Positions 37,154 through 55,204 of a stretch of DNA of 64,000 bases are shown here, piece by piece. Location of the stretch: sequence record NC_023719.1. The stretch is one strand, 5' to 3'. The notes under the pieces were generated by a model, which did no database searches, was not told the DNA's origin, and saw nothing but the letters and a program-made list of their open reading frames with translations. The first letter of the stretch is position 1, and each line of letters opens with the position of its first letter. The position numbers and the translations under genes are program-made.

Positions 37154-37468
37154 ATGGAACATAAAAATAAAAAGTGGGACAAAAGCGAAAAAGAATTCAG
37201 AACAAGAATGAATCAACTGGAAATTAGAGATGCTAGAAAATTAGTTTCTAACATAGATAATGATCCTGAAAACGAAAAACGTTTAGAAAGACAAGAATGT
37301 AAAGTTTGTTTTTATAAAACTAAAATTGGTATGTCAGCTATGACATACGCTAATTGCGGGTTCTGTGATACAAAAACGTTATATGGTAGTTCAAATGTTG
37401 ATTTATTATGTAAAAGATGCGCAATAATGAATGAAGTATGTAAGCATTGCGGTGGAGAAATGGATTAA
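37154..37468 (+). CDS. Multi-CxxC zinc-binding protein
   Basis: Four CxxC pairs. Confidence 0.7.
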   Translation: MEHKNKKWDKSEKEFRTRMNQLEIRDARKLVSNIDNDPENEKRLERQECKVCFYKTKIGMSAMTYANCGFCDTKTLYGSSNVDLLCKRCAIMNEVCKHCGGEMD

Positions 37469-38269: not shown

Positions 38270-38572
38270 ATGAAAATGAAACGCTCAAATGTCCACTATA
38301 TTGACCAAAAGCTGAGAAGAAAGAAGCAAAGTAGGAATAGAAAATTTAAAAACAATGATTCAATAAGTATAATGACTTATTGTCAATGTTGTAAAAAGCA
38401 AACAACTAAGAAGAATAAAATTAATAATTTCTATTTATGTGATAAATGTTTTAGTTTAAATTATTTGAATATAAATGAAGAAAATCTAAATAGTAATATG
38501 CCGAAGTATATAAATTGGGAAGATGATTTAGACTATCTCTATCAAAACTTCTGGTTAAATGGAGATATATAG
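38270..38572 (+). CDS. Basic zinc-ribbon hypothetical protein
   Basis: AAGGAG RBS; CQCC...CDKC. Confidence 0.65.
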   Translation: MKMKRSNVHYIDQKLRRKKQSRNRKFKNNDSISIMTYCQCCKKQTTKKNKINNFYLCDKCFSLNYLNINEENLNSNMPKYINWEDDLDYLYQNFWLNGDI

Positions 38573-39160: not shown

Positions 39161-39171
39161 AAAGAGAGGTT

Positions 39172-39849
39172 TTATCCTCTCTTTACTCTTCTAAGTCTAG
39201 AACTTGCAACATGGAGTTCTAGATTTTTTACTTTATCTTCTAATTCACTCAATTGGCTAGTAGCTTGATCAAAACTTAACCAAGTGTTGAAGTTTAAAGT
39301 TTCTCTAATAAGATTGTATGATTCATCGTCAGCCACAACATATTCATCCATAAACCTTACTCCAGTTATGTCTGATACTGGTATTGGTCCTTCGTGAACT
39401 ACTTGTTCGATTTCATCAATAGATGTTTGCCAGCGTGGTGTATTGTCATCAAATAAAGACTCCAATTCTTCTTCATCATCTGGGTCATTTAGGAGTACGA
39501 CCATATCGTCATAATCCGGAACTAGATTACTTGTATCCGTTTCAATTTTTAAATCAACCGGCACATTTGGCATATTTTTATCAAACTGTGTTGCATCAAC
39601 GACTTTTTCTCTGTAGTAGTTTAAAACATCTTCATTACTGCCTAGATATATACCATTTAGATTGCCTGACGGTGTTCTTTCTTCAACGGGTATATTTTCA
39701 CTTTCTAAACCGTTACTGACAACTCCAGTTTCTCCACTTGGTAGTAATGAACCAGATTCTTTTATTTTTTGTAATACTTGACTTGAAGTAGTATGGAAAA
39801 GTTCAATCTTTCCACTAGCTAATTTTTTTAATTTCAATAATCTTGTCAT
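39172..39849 (-). CDS. ADP-ribosyltransferase-fold protein (paralog 1)
   Basis: LFHTTS...I..SG.L.P, GIYLG, PV.LKI...NLVPD; AAGGAG RBS favours start 39849 (MTRLL) over 39870. Confidence 0.6.
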   Translation of the reverse strand: MTRLLKLKKLASGKIELFHTTSSQVLQKIKESGSLLPSGETGVVSNGLESENIPVEERTPSGNLNGIYLGSNEDVLNYYREKVVDATQFDKNMPNVPVDLKIETDTSNLVPDYDDMVVLLNDPDDEEELESLFDDNTPRWQTSIDEIEQVVHEGPIPVSDITGVRFMDEYVVADDESYNLIRETLNFNTWLSFDQATSQLSELEDKVKNLELHVASSRLRRVKRG

Positions 39850-39875
39850 CGAATTTACTCCTTGTAACATATTTG

Positions 39876-39904
39876 TTTACAAATAAACACAAAAATTATA
39901 TAAT
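39876..39904 (+). promoter_or_regulatory. Sigma-A-type (early) promoter of the ADP-ribosylglycohydrolase
   Basis: TTTACA-N17-TATAAT. Confidence 0.8.
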
Positions 39905-39950
39905 TAAATTATAAGATATTTATTATCATAAATTATAAGGCGGCGAAAAA

Positions 39951-40823
39951 ATGTTAAATAAATTTAAAGGTGCTCTTTTAGGTTTAGCAGTTGGAGACGC
40001 TTTAGGTGCAACAACAGAATTTATGTCAAAAGAAGAAGTTAAAGTGATGTATAATTATTTAAATCAAATTGTTGGTGGTGGCTGGTTAAGTTTAAAAGCT
40101 GGTGATATTACTGACGATACTGAAATGACTATTTGTGTAGCAGAAGGAATTTTAAATAATTACAATAATCCTATAGAATCTATTGGAAAAGAGTTTATTA
40201 AATGGTACGAATCTGATCCAAAAGATGTGGGTTTATCTACTTCTTGTTCTATAAAAAACTATTTTTCTTATGGAGACTGGTTTAAAGCATCTAAGAAATC
40301 TCATGAAGAATTAGGAAAAAGTGCAGGTAATGGTAGTTTAATGCGTTGTTTACCAGTTGCATTAGCTTATTCAAATAAAGATAAAATGATCGAAATTACA
40401 ACTAAGCAATCAAAAATGACTCATTATGATGATTTAGCTTCAGAAGCGTGTGTAATCTACAGTAAAATTGCAAGTAACATTATTGATGGAATAGTTCTTA
40501 AAGAAGCTATAAGAAAAGAAGTAAAGAATACTAAATATCAAATGGTATTAACTAACAACTTAAATACCGTTCCGGATGGTTTTGTAGTTAATACTTTTAG
40601 TTGGGTTTTAAAGGTATTGATTAATACTAATAATTTTAATGATGTTGTGGAACAATTAGCTAATTTAGGTGAAGACTCTGATACAACTGCTGCAATCGCT
40701 GGTGGATTAGCTGGTTTACACTATGGTTATGATAGTATCGATGAAAAATATAAGAATAAAATCATAGTAAGAAATCAAATAGAAGAAATTGCAGAAAAGT
40801 TATACAATGTACGGAATCAATAG
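39951..40823 (+). CDS. draG: ADP-ribosylglycohydrolase (DraG/ARH family)
   Basis: GLAVGDALG, TDDTEM, SAGNGSLMR, GEDSDTTAAIAGGLAG. Confidence 0.95.
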   Translation: MLNKFKGALLGLAVGDALGATTEFMSKEEVKVMYNYLNQIVGGGWLSLKAGDITDDTEMTICVAEGILNNYNNPIESIGKEFIKWYESDPKDVGLSTSCSIKNYFSYGDWFKASKKSHEELGKSAGNGSLMRCLPVALAYSNKDKMIEITTKQSKMTHYDDLASEACVIYSKIASNIIDGIVLKEAIRKEVKNTKYQMVLTNNLNTVPDGFVVNTFSWVLKVLINTNNFNDVVEQLANLGEDSDTTAAIAGGLAGLHYGYDSIDEKYKNKIIVRNQIEEIAEKLYNVRNQ

Positions 40824-40852: not shown

Positions 40853-40881
40853 TTTACAATATACCGTTTATATGATATAAT
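40853..40881 (+). promoter_or_regulatory. Sigma-A-type promoter overlapped by a 17-bp inverted repeat
   Basis: TTTACA-N17-TATAAT; accgtttatatgatata/tatatcatataaacggt. Confidence 0.7.
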
Positions 40882-40975
40882 AAATATATATCATATAAAC
40901 GGTTTTAATTTTTTCAAATGATGTTGAATATAATGTTATTAAATAATAATCACATTGTGAACAAGGAGGAATATT

Positions 40976-51412: not shown

Positions 51413-52990
51413 ATGAAGAAAACTAAATTAACGACAGCAGGAAAGGCGTTAATCTTTGGTCTAGTATTATTAATAGTGGCAGGTGTTACTTACTTTGCAG
51501 GTGGATTTAATGCAGTAAGCAATTTATTCTCTGGTTCCGATGATTCAGGTTCTACCCAAAGTGAAAAAGTTGATATCGTAGGTTCTGGTTCAACTAAAGA
51601 TGATGGAGTGATTAATGTTTCACTTGATGAGTGGATTGGTTGGAAATCGGTAATTGATGCTAACGGTGGTCTTGAAACAGCAAAAGGTTCTATTTATGAT
51701 AAACTTGGTATTAAAGTAAAAATTCACGTTATTAACGATGCAAATCAATCTTCAAATGCTTTAATTAAAGGTGACCTTGATGGTGCAGGTTATACAGTTA
51801 ATCGATATGCGTTCTTATATCCAAAGTTTAAAGAAAATGGTGTAAATGTAGTAATGCCATATGTAACAAATTTCTCTTCTGGTGGAGATGGTATCATTTC
51901 AAAATCTGATATAAATTCGGTTGAAGATTTAGTTGGTAAGAAAATTGCAGTTCCACGTTTCTCCGAAGCTCAAACTCTAGTTGAATGGTTATTAGCAAAA
52001 TCTGATTTATCTGATAAAGATGTAAAAGAAATTCGCAAAAACATGGTAATGTTTGATACTCCTGATGATGCAGCTAAAGCATTCTTCGCAGGTCAAGTTG
52101 ACGCAGCAGCTACATGGCAGCCATATTTAAGTCAAGCTCAAGAAACAACAGGTGCAAAACTTCTTTTCTCTACAAAAGTTGCTGAAAATATTATTTTAGA
52201 TGGTATCGTATTCCGACAAGATTTCATTGATAAAAACAAAGAAGCAGTTGTTAAATTCACTGAAGGTGCACTTGAAGCAATGGATTTATACACAAAAGAA
52301 TTTAGTCCTATTAAAGATACAATGCCTTTATTCGCAACTGAAAGTAATGAAAATATCGTTGCAATGGCTGGTGATGCTAAATTAGCTTCTTACAATGAAA
52401 ACAAATCATTATTAACAAATGAAGCAGTAACGTTATTCACTGATATGAGTAATATCTGGAAAACTTTAGGTGAAACTTCTTTCCCCGATGAAGCTAAAAA
52501 AGCATTTACAACATCAATTATTGATTCAGTTGATAGCAAGTTTGCTTCATCAGTAACTGCTGATACAAATAAACCAAAGTTCACTGAAGAAAAACGTCAA
52601 GAAGCAAAACAGGTTGATAATGTTAACTCTCTATTAAAACAATCAGCTACAATTGAATTCCAACCTAACTCTGCTGCATTTGCTAACGCCGCTGAAGCTA
52701 GTAAAGTTCTTGAAGAATTTGTAAAAACTGCTCAAATCTTAAATGGTTCAATCATTCAAATTGAAGGTAACGTTAATAATACAGGTGCCGGCAATGATGA
52801 AGCAATTAGTAAAAAATTATCTGAACAACGTGCTAAAGCTGTAGCGATGTACTTACAACAACAAGGTGTTGATGCTACACGATTCGTAGTAGTTGGTAAT
52901 GGTACAACAAAACAAATTGGTGATAACAACACTGAAGCTGGTAAGGCTCAAAACCGTCGTACAGATGTATTCTTCAAAATCGTCGAATAA
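51413..52990 (+). CDS. ABC substrate-binding protein (NMT1/SsuA-like) fused to OmpA-like domain, paralog 1
   Basis: N-terminal TM; S.GGDGII, DLVGKKIAVP, AAATWQPY, ILDG; C-terminal LSEQRAKAVA.YL...GVD..R...NRRTD. Confidence 0.9.
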   Translation: MKKTKLTTAGKALIFGLVLLIVAGVTYFAGGFNAVSNLFSGSDDSGSTQSEKVDIVGSGSTKDDGVINVSLDEWIGWKSVIDANGGLETAKGSIYDKLGIKVKIHVINDANQSSNALIKGDLDGAGYTVNRYAFLYPKFKENGVNVVMPYVTNFSSGGDGIISKSDINSVEDLVGKKIAVPRFSEAQTLVEWLLAKSDLSDKDVKEIRKNMVMFDTPDDAAKAFFAGQVDAAATWQPYLSQAQETTGAKLLFSTKVAENIILDGIVFRQDFIDKNKEAVVKFTEGALEAMDLYTKEFSPIKDTMPLFATESNENIVAMAGDAKLASYNENKSLLTNEAVTLFTDMSNIWKTLGETSFPDEAKKAFTTSIIDSVDSKFASSVTADTNKPKFTEEKRQEAKQVDNVNSLLKQSATIEFQPNSAAFANAAEASKVLEEFVKTAQILNGSIIQIEGNVNNTGAGNDEAISKKLSEQRAKAVAMYLQQQGVDATRFVVVGNGTTKQIGDNNTEAGKAQNRRTDVFFKIVE

Positions 52991-53061
52991 AAAGTAAAAA
53001 AATAAATAAAATATACTCCCCCTTTCATGGGGGAGTTTTTTAACAGAAAGGAGAATTAAAA

Positions 53062-54618
53062 ATGAAAAAAACCAAATTAACATTAGTTGGTAAAATCGTA
53101 ATCTTTGTATTCGTCTTAGCTTTAGTACTAGGTGGAGTATTCTTAATTGGTGGTTTTAATTTTTCAAAAGATGATAATGATACACCATCAAAAGATACAA
53201 AAACTACACAAAACAGTAATGTTAGTAATGAGCTTCCAAAAAATGAAAATAGTAACAATGAAATTAATTTGTCTCTTACCGAGAAGATTAGCTGGAAGCC
53301 AATTTTAGATGCCAATGGAGGGTTAACAACTCAACCGGGCTCAGTATACGATAAACTTGGTATTAAAGTGAACATTAAGATTGATGGAGATGCTGTAAGT
53401 ATCAGTAATGATTTTATTGAAAATAATGTAAACGCATTAGCATACACTATCAATAGATATGCAGGAACATATAAGAAGTTTAAGGATAATAACGCTGAAC
53501 CTATAATGCCTTACATTGTTGATTCTTCAGATGGTAGTGATGGAATTGTAGTGAAAGAAGGAATTAACAGCGTTAATGATTTCATTGGTAAAAAAATCGC
53601 TGTCCCTAATCTTACTGCAGCACAAACTATGATTTGGTGGTTAATGTTGAAATCCGATTTAAATGAAGATCAAATCGAAAAAATTAAAAGTAATATGACT
53701 CTTTATAAATCAACTGTTGCAGCTTCAGAAGCATTCTTTAAAGGTGAAGCAGATGTTGTTGTAACAAGACAACCATATTTAACTAACGCGAAAAATACTC
53801 CCGGAATGAAAGTTTTATTTACCACTAAATCAGCTAACAACCTTATCTTAGATGGGATTTTATTTAGAAAAGATTTTGCTGATCAAAATCCAGAAGTTGT
53901 ATCTAAGTTCATTGATGGAGCTTTACAATCCATTAACATAAATACATTTGATAACATCAAGACTATAGATATTTTTAAAGACAAAACTGATGAAGAATTA
54001 AATCAAATGTTAACTGAATTAAAGTTTAGTGACTATAGCGCAAATCATAATTTATTAAATGGAGTATCACAAGATCTATTTAATGATATGAATAAAGTAT
54101 GGAATAAAATTGGTGAATCAGTTGATAACGATGCAGCTAGTAAGGCGTTCTCCACTAAATTCATTGATGGTCTAAGCTCAAAATACACTTTAGAAAAAGT
54201 AGAGACTAAAACTGTCGATGAGGAAACTAGACAAAAAGCTTTATCTCAAGATAATGATGAAGCGTTATTGAAAAAATCAACAACAATTAATTTTAAATCT
54301 AATAGTGCAAAATTCGTTAATGAAGATGAAGCTAAAAAAGCTCTTAATGAATTTATAAATATTGCCCAATTCTTGGATGGCGCAATTATCCAAATTGAAG
54401 GTAATATTGCTGGAAAAGATAATTCAGAAGTTGGAAAACAATTATCGCTTCAAAGAGCGAAAACAGTAGCAGAGTATTTAAAACAACAAGGTGTTGATCC
54501 TTCTAGATTTGTAGTTGTTGGTAATGGTACTTCAAAACAAATTGCAAGTAATGACACTGAAGAAGGTATGAAGAAAAATAGACGTACTGATATAGTATTT
54601 AAAATTGTTGAAGAATAA
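53062..54618 (+). CDS. ABC substrate-binding protein fused to OmpA-like domain, paralog 2
   Basis: Same architecture and MKKTKLT start; LSLQRAKTVAEYL...NRRTD. Confidence 0.9.
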   Translation: MKKTKLTLVGKIVIFVFVLALVLGGVFLIGGFNFSKDDNDTPSKDTKTTQNSNVSNELPKNENSNNEINLSLTEKISWKPILDANGGLTTQPGSVYDKLGIKVNIKIDGDAVSISNDFIENNVNALAYTINRYAGTYKKFKDNNAEPIMPYIVDSSDGSDGIVVKEGINSVNDFIGKKIAVPNLTAAQTMIWWLMLKSDLNEDQIEKIKSNMTLYKSTVAASEAFFKGEADVVVTRQPYLTNAKNTPGMKVLFTTKSANNLILDGILFRKDFADQNPEVVSKFIDGALQSININTFDNIKTIDIFKDKTDEELNQMLTELKFSDYSANHNLLNGVSQDLFNDMNKVWNKIGESVDNDAASKAFSTKFIDGLSSKYTLEKVETKTVDEETRQKALSQDNDEALLKKSTTINFKSNSAKFVNEDEAKKALNEFINIAQFLDGAIIQIEGNIAGKDNSEVGKQLSLQRAKTVAEYLKQQGVDPSRFVVVGNGTSKQIASNDTEEGMKKNRRTDIVFKIVEE

Positions 54619-54670: not shown

Positions 54671-55204
54671 TTAAAATTCTTCTATTTTAGTAATCTCATT
54701 TGTTGTAATAGCTTGAGGATACTTAGCTAAATCTAAATTCAATATATCGAAAATGCCCCCACCTTTAAATGGGTCTTCATCGGGAGTATATAGAATTGGG
54801 TCGTCTCCATAATGACCTTCAAAAGGTAAATAGTATTTTGAATTTTCTTCTCTACTACCACCAGCCCACTGCTTTAATTCTTCCTCAGTATATTCTGTTA
54901 ATTCTAGCGTTTTGTCATAATCAAATATATCATAATTAAGAACGTTGTCATCTGGTAGTAATAAATTTTCATCAATGTTTAAGTGTAGAACTACAGGGTT
55001 TCCTCCTTTTTGTTCAACAGTGTAGTCAGCAAAATCCTTAGCTTCTTTAAATTGATTTGTAACATAAACAAAGCTTGAATTGGAATCTTTAGAATTAGAA
55101 TTACCACTATTTGGTATAATGCCATTTTCTTTTATAGAATCTAAGTATATACTACTTGTACCGTGATAAAGAATTCTACTAGCTTTTCTAATTAGTCTTT
55201 TCAT
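54671..55204 (-). CDS. ADP-ribosyltransferase-fold protein (paralog 2)
   Basis: Minus strand (track label is wrong); LYHGTS...IKENGI.P, FVYVT...A..FA, PVVL.L...LLPD; GAGG RBS favours start 55204 (MKRLIRKA) over 55219. Confidence 0.7.
   Translation of the reverse strand: MKRLIRKASRILYHGTSSIYLDSIKENGIIPNSGNSNSKDSNSSFVYVTNQFKEAKDFADYTVEQKGGNPVVLHLNIDENLLLPDDNVLNYDIFDYDKTLELTEYTEEELKQWAGGSREENSKYYLPFEGHYGDDPILYTPDEDPFKGGGIFDILNLDLAKYPQAITTNEITKIEEF

Follow-up and report, generated by a model that had tools for sequence, protein, structure and literature searches.

A predicted ADP-ribosyltransferase and an ADP-ribosylhydrolase encoded head-to-head in the replication region of Bacillus phage G as a possible writer/eraser module

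The 64,000-nucleotide stretch of DNA analysed here (the window) is identical (100%) to positions 124001-188000 of the genome record of Bacillus phage G (NC_023719, 497,513 bp); coordinates refer to the window unless assigned to the record or to another locus. Within the plus-strand replication block of the phage, it harbours two genes in head-to-head (divergent) orientation, gp233 and gp234, which are predicted to encode a mono-ADP-ribosyltransferase (ART) and an ADP-ribosylhydrolase (ARH), respectively. The pair and its presumed control elements are:

39161-39184, minus strand: terminator-like hairpin directly after the gp233 stop codon, common to gp233 and its convergent neighbour gp232
39172-39849, minus strand: gp233 (open reading frame and annotation), 225 amino acids, predicted mono-ADP-ribosyltransferase of the H-Y-[EDQ] clade
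39850-39950: divergent spacer of 101 bp between gp233 and gp234, containing both ribosome-binding sites and the gp234 promoter
39876-39904, plus strand: sigma-A-type promoter of gp234, TTTACA-N17-TATAAT, 11 of 12 consensus positions
39951-40823, plus strand: gp234, 290 amino acids, predicted DraG/Tri1-type binuclear-metal ADP-ribosylhydrolase
40863-40903, plus strand: terminator-like hairpin (17 bp) after gp234, overlapping the promoter of gp235 (40853-40881)

The longest open reading frame of gp233 extends from 39172 to 39870 (minus strand, 232 amino acids) and begins at an upstream in-frame ATG at 39870. Translation almost certainly starts further inside, at the second ATG (39849), since this codon is preceded by AAGGAG, corresponds to the annotated start and is the position at which all orthologues begin. 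The intergenic gap therefore amounts to 101 bp, in line with the divergence across about 100 bp described in the initial annotation of this DNA. An Rfam scan of the gp233/gp234 locus yielded no match.

The product of gp234 matched the Pfam family ADP_ribosyl_GH (PF03747) over profile positions 1-286 of 287 (2.9e-61; 208.1 bits at a cut-off of 26.2), and a comparison with the PDB retrieved the structures of DraG (2woc, 5e-43) and Tri1 (6dre, 5e-34). All metal-ligand motifs are present (E23, T54-D55-D56-T57, D92 and D242-S-D244-T245). Residues E23, D55/D56 and D92 align with the catalytic and metal-binding residues E28, D60 and D97 of RruDraG, D97 being the aspartate that is specific to the DraG subclass. 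The D242-S-D244-T245 motif aligns with the C-terminal DxDT motif of DraG and F211 with its adenine-stacking Tyr212; the ligand residues and F211 are invariant among five orthologues. Judged by these motifs gp234 is unambiguously predicted to be a catalytically intact ARH of the DraG/Tri1 type, as had been proposed initially. Its scores are below the NCBIfam equivalog cut-offs for TIGR02662 (212.6 versus 337) and NF041672 (169.1 versus 490), and the Tri1 profile (NF041672) aligned to gp234 only from profile position 67, the N-terminal toxin-binding extension of Tri1 being absent. Because this toxin-plugging extension is missing, gp234 should act as an enzyme only and not as a toxin occluder. 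A literature search did not find any experimentally characterised phage-encoded eraser of the ARH fold.

The product of gp233 did not match any entry in Pfam (including PF03496, Alt/VIP2) and NCBIfam at E-values up to 1, in PADLOC or among the PDB sequences, and a comparison with PHROGs retrieved only a family of unknown function. When 1.84 billion representative proteins were searched with a profile, 50 relatives were recovered. The motifs LFHTTS (with H19), G-x-L-x-P (residues 33-37) and GIYLG (with Y68), from which the initial annotation had deduced an ART fold, are among the most conserved columns (46-55 relatives). Family-wide, the motifs read L-Y-H19-x-T-S, P-S-G-N..G-[IV]-Y68-L, an acidic L-x-P-D-x-D-D loop and W-K-Q-S-L-D..G-Q149-V-V-H-x-G-P-I. 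The basic N-terminal leader that had been pointed out likewise is a genuine feature: it reads MTRLLKLKKLASGK in gp233, and the pattern MKRLxKKA is found across the family and in eight of the ten phage G paralogues. The C-terminal part of gp233 consists of a long helix followed by a basic tail, A-S-S-R-L-[KR]-[KR]-[IV]-K-R-G (residues 211-225), which is conserved in the orthologues, in gp141 and in several distant members and resembles the leader M-K-R-L-x-K-K. In the tandem-duplicated relative P0007 the leader of the second repeat begins inside the last residues of the profile match of the first repeat. The tail may be the remnant of a tandem array or a shared motif for targeting or nucleic-acid binding.

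A first AlphaFold model of gp233 based on six sequences (pLDDT 63) gave no significant fold match and was superseded by an AF2 model based on 46 sequences (pLDDT 90.3, pTM 0.85). With this model the best 50 PDB matches in Foldseek were all ART folds (top E-value 5.6e-4, probability 1.0), including the A chains of cholera toxin and LT, DarT, pertussis S1, Rhs ART toxins, PltA, Scabin, CC0527 and Arr. The TM-scores are modest (0.3-0.45), since only the core aligns. In the model H19 is located in strand 14-22 (beta1) and Y68 in strand 66-70 (beta2), and Q149 opens strand 149-153 (beta5), which is the canonical ART layout. H19 is invariant in the 46-sequence alignment and part of an H-x-[ST] motif that aligns with HGT of Tpt1 and HFT of DarT1. 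The Y68 position is occupied by Tyr in the context G-[IV]-Y-L, or by Phe in a minority of the family, and the Q149 position by Gln in most relatives and by Glu in several. According to the model, gp233 is very likely to possess an ART fold, and the fold assignment suggested as a check by the initial annotation supports its reading of gp233 as an ART-fold gene.

The family profile retrieved Tpt1 (tRNA 2'-phosphotransferase, 9e-4) and DarT1 (3e-3) as the best hits among the PDB sequences, both matches covering the beta1-alpha1 NAD-binding motif L-Y-H-x-T...G-x-I-x-P. A profile comparison (hhalign) with the KptA protein of phage G (gp280) aligned only the 18-residue NAD-binding motif, at a probability of 20%. 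Sub-threshold Pfam matches within the family were PARP for gp53 (2.5e-4) and PARP (0.0055) and Tox-ART-HYD1 (0.0077) for two other members. By its residues, the predicted H-Y-Q triad of gp233 is that of the H-Y-[EDQ] clade, which admits Gln as third residue in the ART classification that Iyer et al. cite (PMC9503650). We consider gp233 rather probably competent in catalysis, a more reserved judgement than that on its fold because Gln replaces the Glu which occupies the transition-state-stabilising position of classical enzymes.

Conservation of the gene pair, named beforehand as a test that could refute the pairing, was analysed in the retrieved loci that hold a gp233 orthologue of at least 40% identity. 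These comprise six distinct loci (phage G, L002, L005, L006, L009 and L017; L003 and L004 encode the same ART protein as L002), and in 6 of 6 an ADP_ribosyl_GH gene lies head-to-head with the ART gene at a spacing of 98-141 bp. In phage G the upstream side of the pair encodes a helicase loader, a DnaB-type helicase, a primase and a phage metallopeptidase-like protein; the downstream side encodes gp235 (a small membrane protein), gp236 (a NAD-dependent DNA ligase), a HU-like protein and a 2H/LigT-type phosphoesterase. Gene content varies on the side of the ART gene that faces away from the ARH gene: gp232 is absent from the relatives examined, and L005 and L006 both carry a YitT-type membrane gene and small open reading frames between the ART gene and the metallopeptidase gene. 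In L017 (1959-3296) the ART is a tandem duplication with two domains in one protein of 445 amino acids, and the pair is flanked by homologues of gp210 and gp399, which are located about 20 kb and about 140 kb from gp234 in phage G. Since the pair lies among different genes in L017, it was moved or retained as a unit. The ART proteins share 40-57% identity with their phage G counterpart, compared to 59-74% for the ARH proteins, and this faster divergence of the ART is as expected for an effector and its eraser. A search of IMG/VR for related loci retrieved phage G only.

A comparable arrangement exists in an unrelated, T4-like lineage: in the Cronobacter phages S13 and LPCS28 a homologue of T4 Alt lies head-to-head with an ARH gene. 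The pair (L030:230-3259 in LPCS28) is divergent with a gap of 42 bp and combines a DraG/Tri1-like ARH with an Alt homologue of 693 amino acids (ADPrib_exo_Tox, 1e-14). This arrangement is annotated and has apparently not been discussed as a writer/eraser pair. The ARH genes of Serratia phage BF and Streptomyces phage LazerLemon do not have a recognisable ART neighbour.

The two genes of phage G also differ in their putative promoters. The exact sequence TTTACA-N17-TATAAT is present in six copies in the window compared to 0.1 expected (39876, 40853, 41493 and three more) and in 106 copies genome-wide, every one of them in sense orientation to a downstream gene. About 80 of the 106 are located at 368-477 kb, an arm of small genes, often with one copy per gene, and an isolated cluster of three precedes gp234, gp235 and gp236. 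Most copies carry an extended -10 element, TGATATAAT or TTATATAAT. Of the consensus early promoter claimed for gp234 in the initial annotation, the near-consensus element stands and belongs to an enriched class, whereas the early timing is only inferred from it: gp234 is probably driven by a host sigma-A promoter early in infection. The hairpin after gp234 indicates that the gene forms its own transcription unit; the -10 box of the gp235 promoter lies inside the stem-loop of this hairpin (40853-40903).

No promoter of the sigma-70-type or TTTACA-N17-TATAAT kind facing gp233 was detected in its upstream region of 101 bp, and no sigma-A-type promoter was found upstream of the paralogous gene gp251. 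Since four other paralogues (gp531, gp532, gp568 and gp610) carry the same strong sigma-A-type promoter as gp234, the ART family is not generally late. At least two sigma factors are annotated in phage G (gp3 and gp69), and a third, gp300, was reported in 2025 (PMC12484599). It is plausible that gp233 is transcribed from a phage-specific promoter, and as far as the promoter type indicates, gp233 and gp234 are regulated differently.

Two further indications of the regulation of gp233 were considered and rejected. The sequence CCTTATAATTT, which precedes both gp233 and gp251, occurs three times in the window (0.25 expected), but only four times genome-wide compared to about two expected, and was dismissed as a promoter; its copy in the gp233/gp234 spacer overlaps the ribosome-binding region of gp234. 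The location on the minus strand does not mark a late gene either, given that structural and replication genes are both encoded on the plus strand and that other lone minus-strand genes have a sigma-A-type promoter on their own strand. No motif common to gp233 and the upstream regions of the structural genes was visible.

When the family profile was run against the complete genome of phage G, exactly ten ART paralogues were detected (gp53, gp123, gp141, gp233, gp251, gp336, gp531, gp532, gp568 and gp610), and seven of the nine paralogues of gp233 were also recovered independently as structural neighbours. The His of the triad is present in all ten, the beta2 position is occupied by Tyr or Phe, and Gln is found in eight of the ten. 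Iyer et al. (2022) attributed "at least 10 ARTs" to phage G (PMC9503650). As this count equals ours, the ten-member family has very probably been recognised as ARTs in their survey, the main text of which names neither gp233 nor the gp233/gp234 pair (PMC9503650). The ARTs and the ARH of phage G have been counted previously, and the gp233/gp234 module has not been described. The initial annotation recognised neither the ten-member expansion nor this earlier survey, which covers phage ARTs, ARHs and ART-ARH pairs.

Several paralogues and relatives of gp233 have other noteworthy gene neighbourhoods. The gene gp122 encodes a Macro domain (7e-25), and the ART paralogue gp123 follows 100 bp downstream on the same strand (record positions 70350-71849; L019:21350-22849). 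This is a second writer/eraser juxtaposition in phage G, with an eraser fold unrelated to ARH. The closest relative located on a long contig proved to be the gp141 locus (L028), which contains two tandem ART genes (L028:8165-9834) adjoining tubulin-like and PPDK-like genes and lacks a Macro gene. The product of gp334 has a deoxyribosyltransferase-like (DrHyd-type) domain, and the paralogue gp336 is located two genes further on. Distant family members were found 3.5 kb from a gene for a bacterial-type PARG (L014:4458-5291, 1.8e-48) and 2.7 kb from one for a WHH/colicin-DNase-type nuclease (L012:8503-9129). The fused domains in L017 and the tandem genes in L028 show that the gp233 family duplicates readily. 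Phage G furthermore possesses an annotated cluster for NAD+ salvage and synthesis (gp273-gp283; record positions 200123-207372; L021:13123-20372), which comprises genes for NUDIX, isochorismatase-like and nicotinate phosphoribosyltransferase proteins, a KptA-like RNA 2'-phosphotransferase (gp280), a nicotinate mononucleotide (NaMN) adenylyltransferase and a NAD synthetase, and which would fit a heavy consumption of NAD+.

Some family members adjoin head genes, namely the large terminase gene (L016:3168-5366) and, in the case of gp141/gp142 (record positions 81748-83236), a gene for a virion structural protein, a context that Iyer et al. take as a sign of packaging into the head (PMC9503650). 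Such a terminase or structural-gene context was not found for gp233, which is not fused to a head protein and is located between the primase and ligase genes of the replication module. The main text of the 2025 particle-proteome and multi-omics study of phage G does not mention gp233, ARTs, the macrodomain or the ARH (PMC12484599). The data give no indication that gp233 is packaged into virions or expressed late, as the initial annotation had envisaged.

The window contains one further member of the family:

54671-55204, minus strand: gp251, 177 amino acids, paralogue of gp233 with the leader MKRLIRKA and the motifs LYHGTS and FVYV

It stands alone on the minus strand, diverges from gyrB (gp252) and has no adjoining eraser gene. 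Its C-terminal half differs from that of gp233, and no Q motif could be aligned. The neighbouring genes gp249 and gp250 (51413-54618) encode adjacent paralogues of about 520 amino acids, both anchored in the membrane at the N-terminus according to their sequence and ending in an OmpA/MotB-like domain; they are located downstream of ABC-transporter-like genes and represent an unusual phage cargo. Closer to gp233, gp228 (37154-37468) and gp230 (38270-38572) encode small Cys-rich (CxxC) proteins, which may be part of the zinc-ribbon expansion of phage G of about 35 copies (PMC7824862).

The arrangement resembles the DraT/DraG and Tre1/Tri1 systems, in which an ART gene also adjoins the gene of a DraG-type binuclear-metal hydrolase, and gp234 shares the E-D-D ligands, its D92 corresponding to D97 of DraG. 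However, DraT and Tre1 are arginine-specific enzymes of the R-S-E type and are encoded in co-directional operons, whereas gp233 has an H-Y-Q triad and the phage G genes are divergent with separate promoters and terminators. Tri1 moreover possesses an occluding N-terminal extension that gp234 lacks, and gp234 does not reach the equivalog cut-offs of either hydrolase. A predicted ART-ARG pair has been described in Aeromonas phages (PMC9503650). As in phage G, the genes of the writer and the ARH eraser are neighbours in these phages and in Cronobacter phages S13 and LPCS28, the latter two sharing the divergent orientation as well. The Cronobacter writer, in contrast, is an Alt/VIP2-type R-S-E enzyme of about 690 amino acids, homologous to the virion-packaged Alt of T4, whereas that of phage G comprises 225 amino acids, carries H-Y-Q, falls outside the curated families and is one of ten members of a paralogous expansion. 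The analogy to T4 Alt drawn in the initial annotation accordingly applies to function and not to sequence, Alt being a member of the R-S-E clade and gp233 lacking a PF03496 match.

T4 also offers a parallel in gene neighbourhood: alt, gene 30 (DNA ligase) and 30.3 (NADAR AdfN) are located within about 5 kb, comparable to the ART, the ARH, gp235 and the NAD-dependent ligase of phage G. However, none of the components is homologous (R-S-E versus H-Y-Q ART, NADAR versus ARH, ATP- versus NAD-dependent ligase), and AdfN acts on the adducts of host DarT1 on DNA and not on the products of Alt (PMC11825919). This parallel may be a coincidence. DarT/DarG and Tpt1/KptA provide the best sequence-level structure matches of the gp233 family, and DarT is also among the fold matches. 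Nevertheless, the similarity is limited to the NAD-binding motif, gp233 does not have the N-terminal RNA-binding lobe of Tpt1, phage G encodes a separate KptA (gp280), and the erasers of DarT are macrodomain or NADAR proteins rather than ARHs. By analogy, gp233/gp234 would work like DraT/DraG, Tre1/Tri1 and the phage ART-ARG pairs without being a member of those families.

The features described in the initial annotation are real and not due to chance, and the interpretation given to them is supported in part. Of the explanations considered, a cognate ADP-ribosylation writer/eraser module of gp233 and gp234 is the best supported, with about even odds of being correct. The analysis shows the folds, the catalytic motifs, the conserved adjacency and the promoter asymmetry, and catalysis, coupling through the same substrate, timing and target are inferred from them. 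Independent parallels also speak for the module, namely gp122/gp123, gp334/gp336, the PARG gene near the ART of L014 and the Alt/ARH pair of the Cronobacter phages. In such a module gp233 would transfer a single ADP-ribose from NAD+ to a macromolecule, either a host or phage protein or possibly a nucleic acid. The eraser gene gp234 would be transcribed by the host RNA polymerase from its strong sigma-A-type promoter, probably as soon as infection begins, and gp233 would depend on another, likely phage-encoded sigma factor, the eraser being present before, or independently of, the writer. By hydrolysing the adduct of gp233, gp234 would either bound the modification in time or shield phage or essential targets.

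Several points weigh against this proposal. DraG-type hydrolases cleave the arginine-linked ADP-ribose that is made by R-S-E enzymes; the acceptors of the characterised H-Y-[EDQ] enzymes are acidic or serine residues, diphthamide, small molecules or nucleic acids. Since DraT and Tre1 are arginine-specific and gp233 carries H-Y-Q, the chemistries of writer and eraser are not obviously matched, so either gp233 has an unexpected acceptor or gp234 an unexpected substrate. Furthermore, Gln at the catalytic position may mean low or no activity of gp233. Toxin-antitoxin and immunity pairs are usually not divergent, separately terminated units. The loci with conserved adjacency all belong to relatives of phage G, and because the whole region is syntenic in all but L017, most of the adjacency evidence is not independent. 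No ARH gene was detected near the distant family members or the other paralogues of phage G. Finally, a search of the literature on the two genes yielded nothing about their expression, proteomics or biochemistry.

Alternatively, the two genes might act independently of each other, gp234 being an orphan counter-defence eraser that, like the phage NADAR protein AdfN and DarG2-like macrodomains, frees phage components of ADP-ribose attached by host ART defence or toxin systems, and gp233 an effector of host takeover, with their adjacency due to shared ancestry or convenience. Phage orphan erasers that neutralise host ARTs, such as the NADAR protein AdfN, are experimentally established (PMC11825919). 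The separate transcription unit of gp234 with its early-type promoter, the ARH genes without ART neighbour in phages BF and LazerLemon, the mismatch between DraG-type chemistry and an H-Y-Q writer and the presence of one ARH compared to ten ARTs all agree with independent roles. However, the pair persists through insertions and deletions and one rearrangement, an unrelated eraser fold (Macro) adjoins another paralogue, and an Alt homologue and an ARH are arranged head-to-head in an unrelated lineage; these three separate juxtapositions of writer and eraser are hard to account for without functional coupling. We regard independent roles as unlikely, albeit as an explanation to be taken seriously, and the action against host ART defences that the initial annotation had included in its reading belongs to this alternative.

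It seems improbable that gp233 is instead a NADase, a producer of soluble ADP-ribose derivatives or a dead NAD or ADP-ribose binder, in which case gp234 would process small derivatives or be unrelated. The Gln in place of Glu as third catalytic residue in most family members, the prediction of some viral ARTs as NADases or NAD phosphorylases (PMC9503650) and the NAD+ cluster gp273-gp283, which suits a heavy NAD+ turnover, would be compatible with this explanation. Nevertheless, H, Y and Q are strongly conserved over about 50 diverged relatives, which speaks against a dead enzyme, the H-Y-[EDQ] clade explicitly includes Q, and the ARG domains of phages have a preference for macromolecular conjugates, as reasoned by Iyer et al. 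(PMC9503650). The pair could also represent a toxin-antitoxin or superinfection-exclusion module, in which a toxic ART is combined with an enzymatic type IV antitoxin and acts against rival phages or stabilises pseudolysogeny. ART-ARG pairs of phages, such as those predicted in Aeromonas phages, have been interpreted in this way (PMC9503650), and an eraser expressed from a constitutive-looking host promoter would suit an antitoxin-first logic. However, the two genes diverge, differ in promoter type, have terminators of their own and do not form a co-directional operon. The pair lies within the replication module of a virulent megaphage, and gp234 lacks a toxin-binding extension; we consider such a toxin-antitoxin or exclusion module improbable. 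As a variant of the writer/eraser module, the gp233 family might consist of nucleic-acid-directed ARTs akin to DarT and Tpt1, and gp234 might be the first ARH-fold eraser of ADP-ribose on DNA or RNA. Ten writers, three erasers or processors (ARH, Macro and DrHyd-like) and the phage's own NAD+ supply would then serve the reversible marking of host or phage nucleic acid during replication. If true, this would explain the position of the pair among primase, ligase and gyrase genes, but we assign it a low probability.

Reversible ADP-ribosylation is central to the conflict between phages and their hosts, as exemplified by Alt and Mod of T4, DarTG and the NADAR and macrodomain counter-defences of phages. 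The writer/eraser concept itself is not new, and the gp233/gp234 pair is an unusual variant of a known gene pairing. We are not aware of any phage system that combines a phage-encoded writer with an eraser from the same phage. Phage G can be cultivated and encodes ten paralogous writers, adjacent erasers of at least two types and enzymes for synthesising its own NAD+. Should the two genes be functionally coupled, a DraG-type hydrolase working together with an H-Y-Q enzyme would widen the chemistry known for one of the two enzyme classes, and the pair would provide a simple two-gene system for the question why a virus undoes its own modification. Should they prove independent, gp234 may nonetheless represent a new class of erasers with an anti-defence role.

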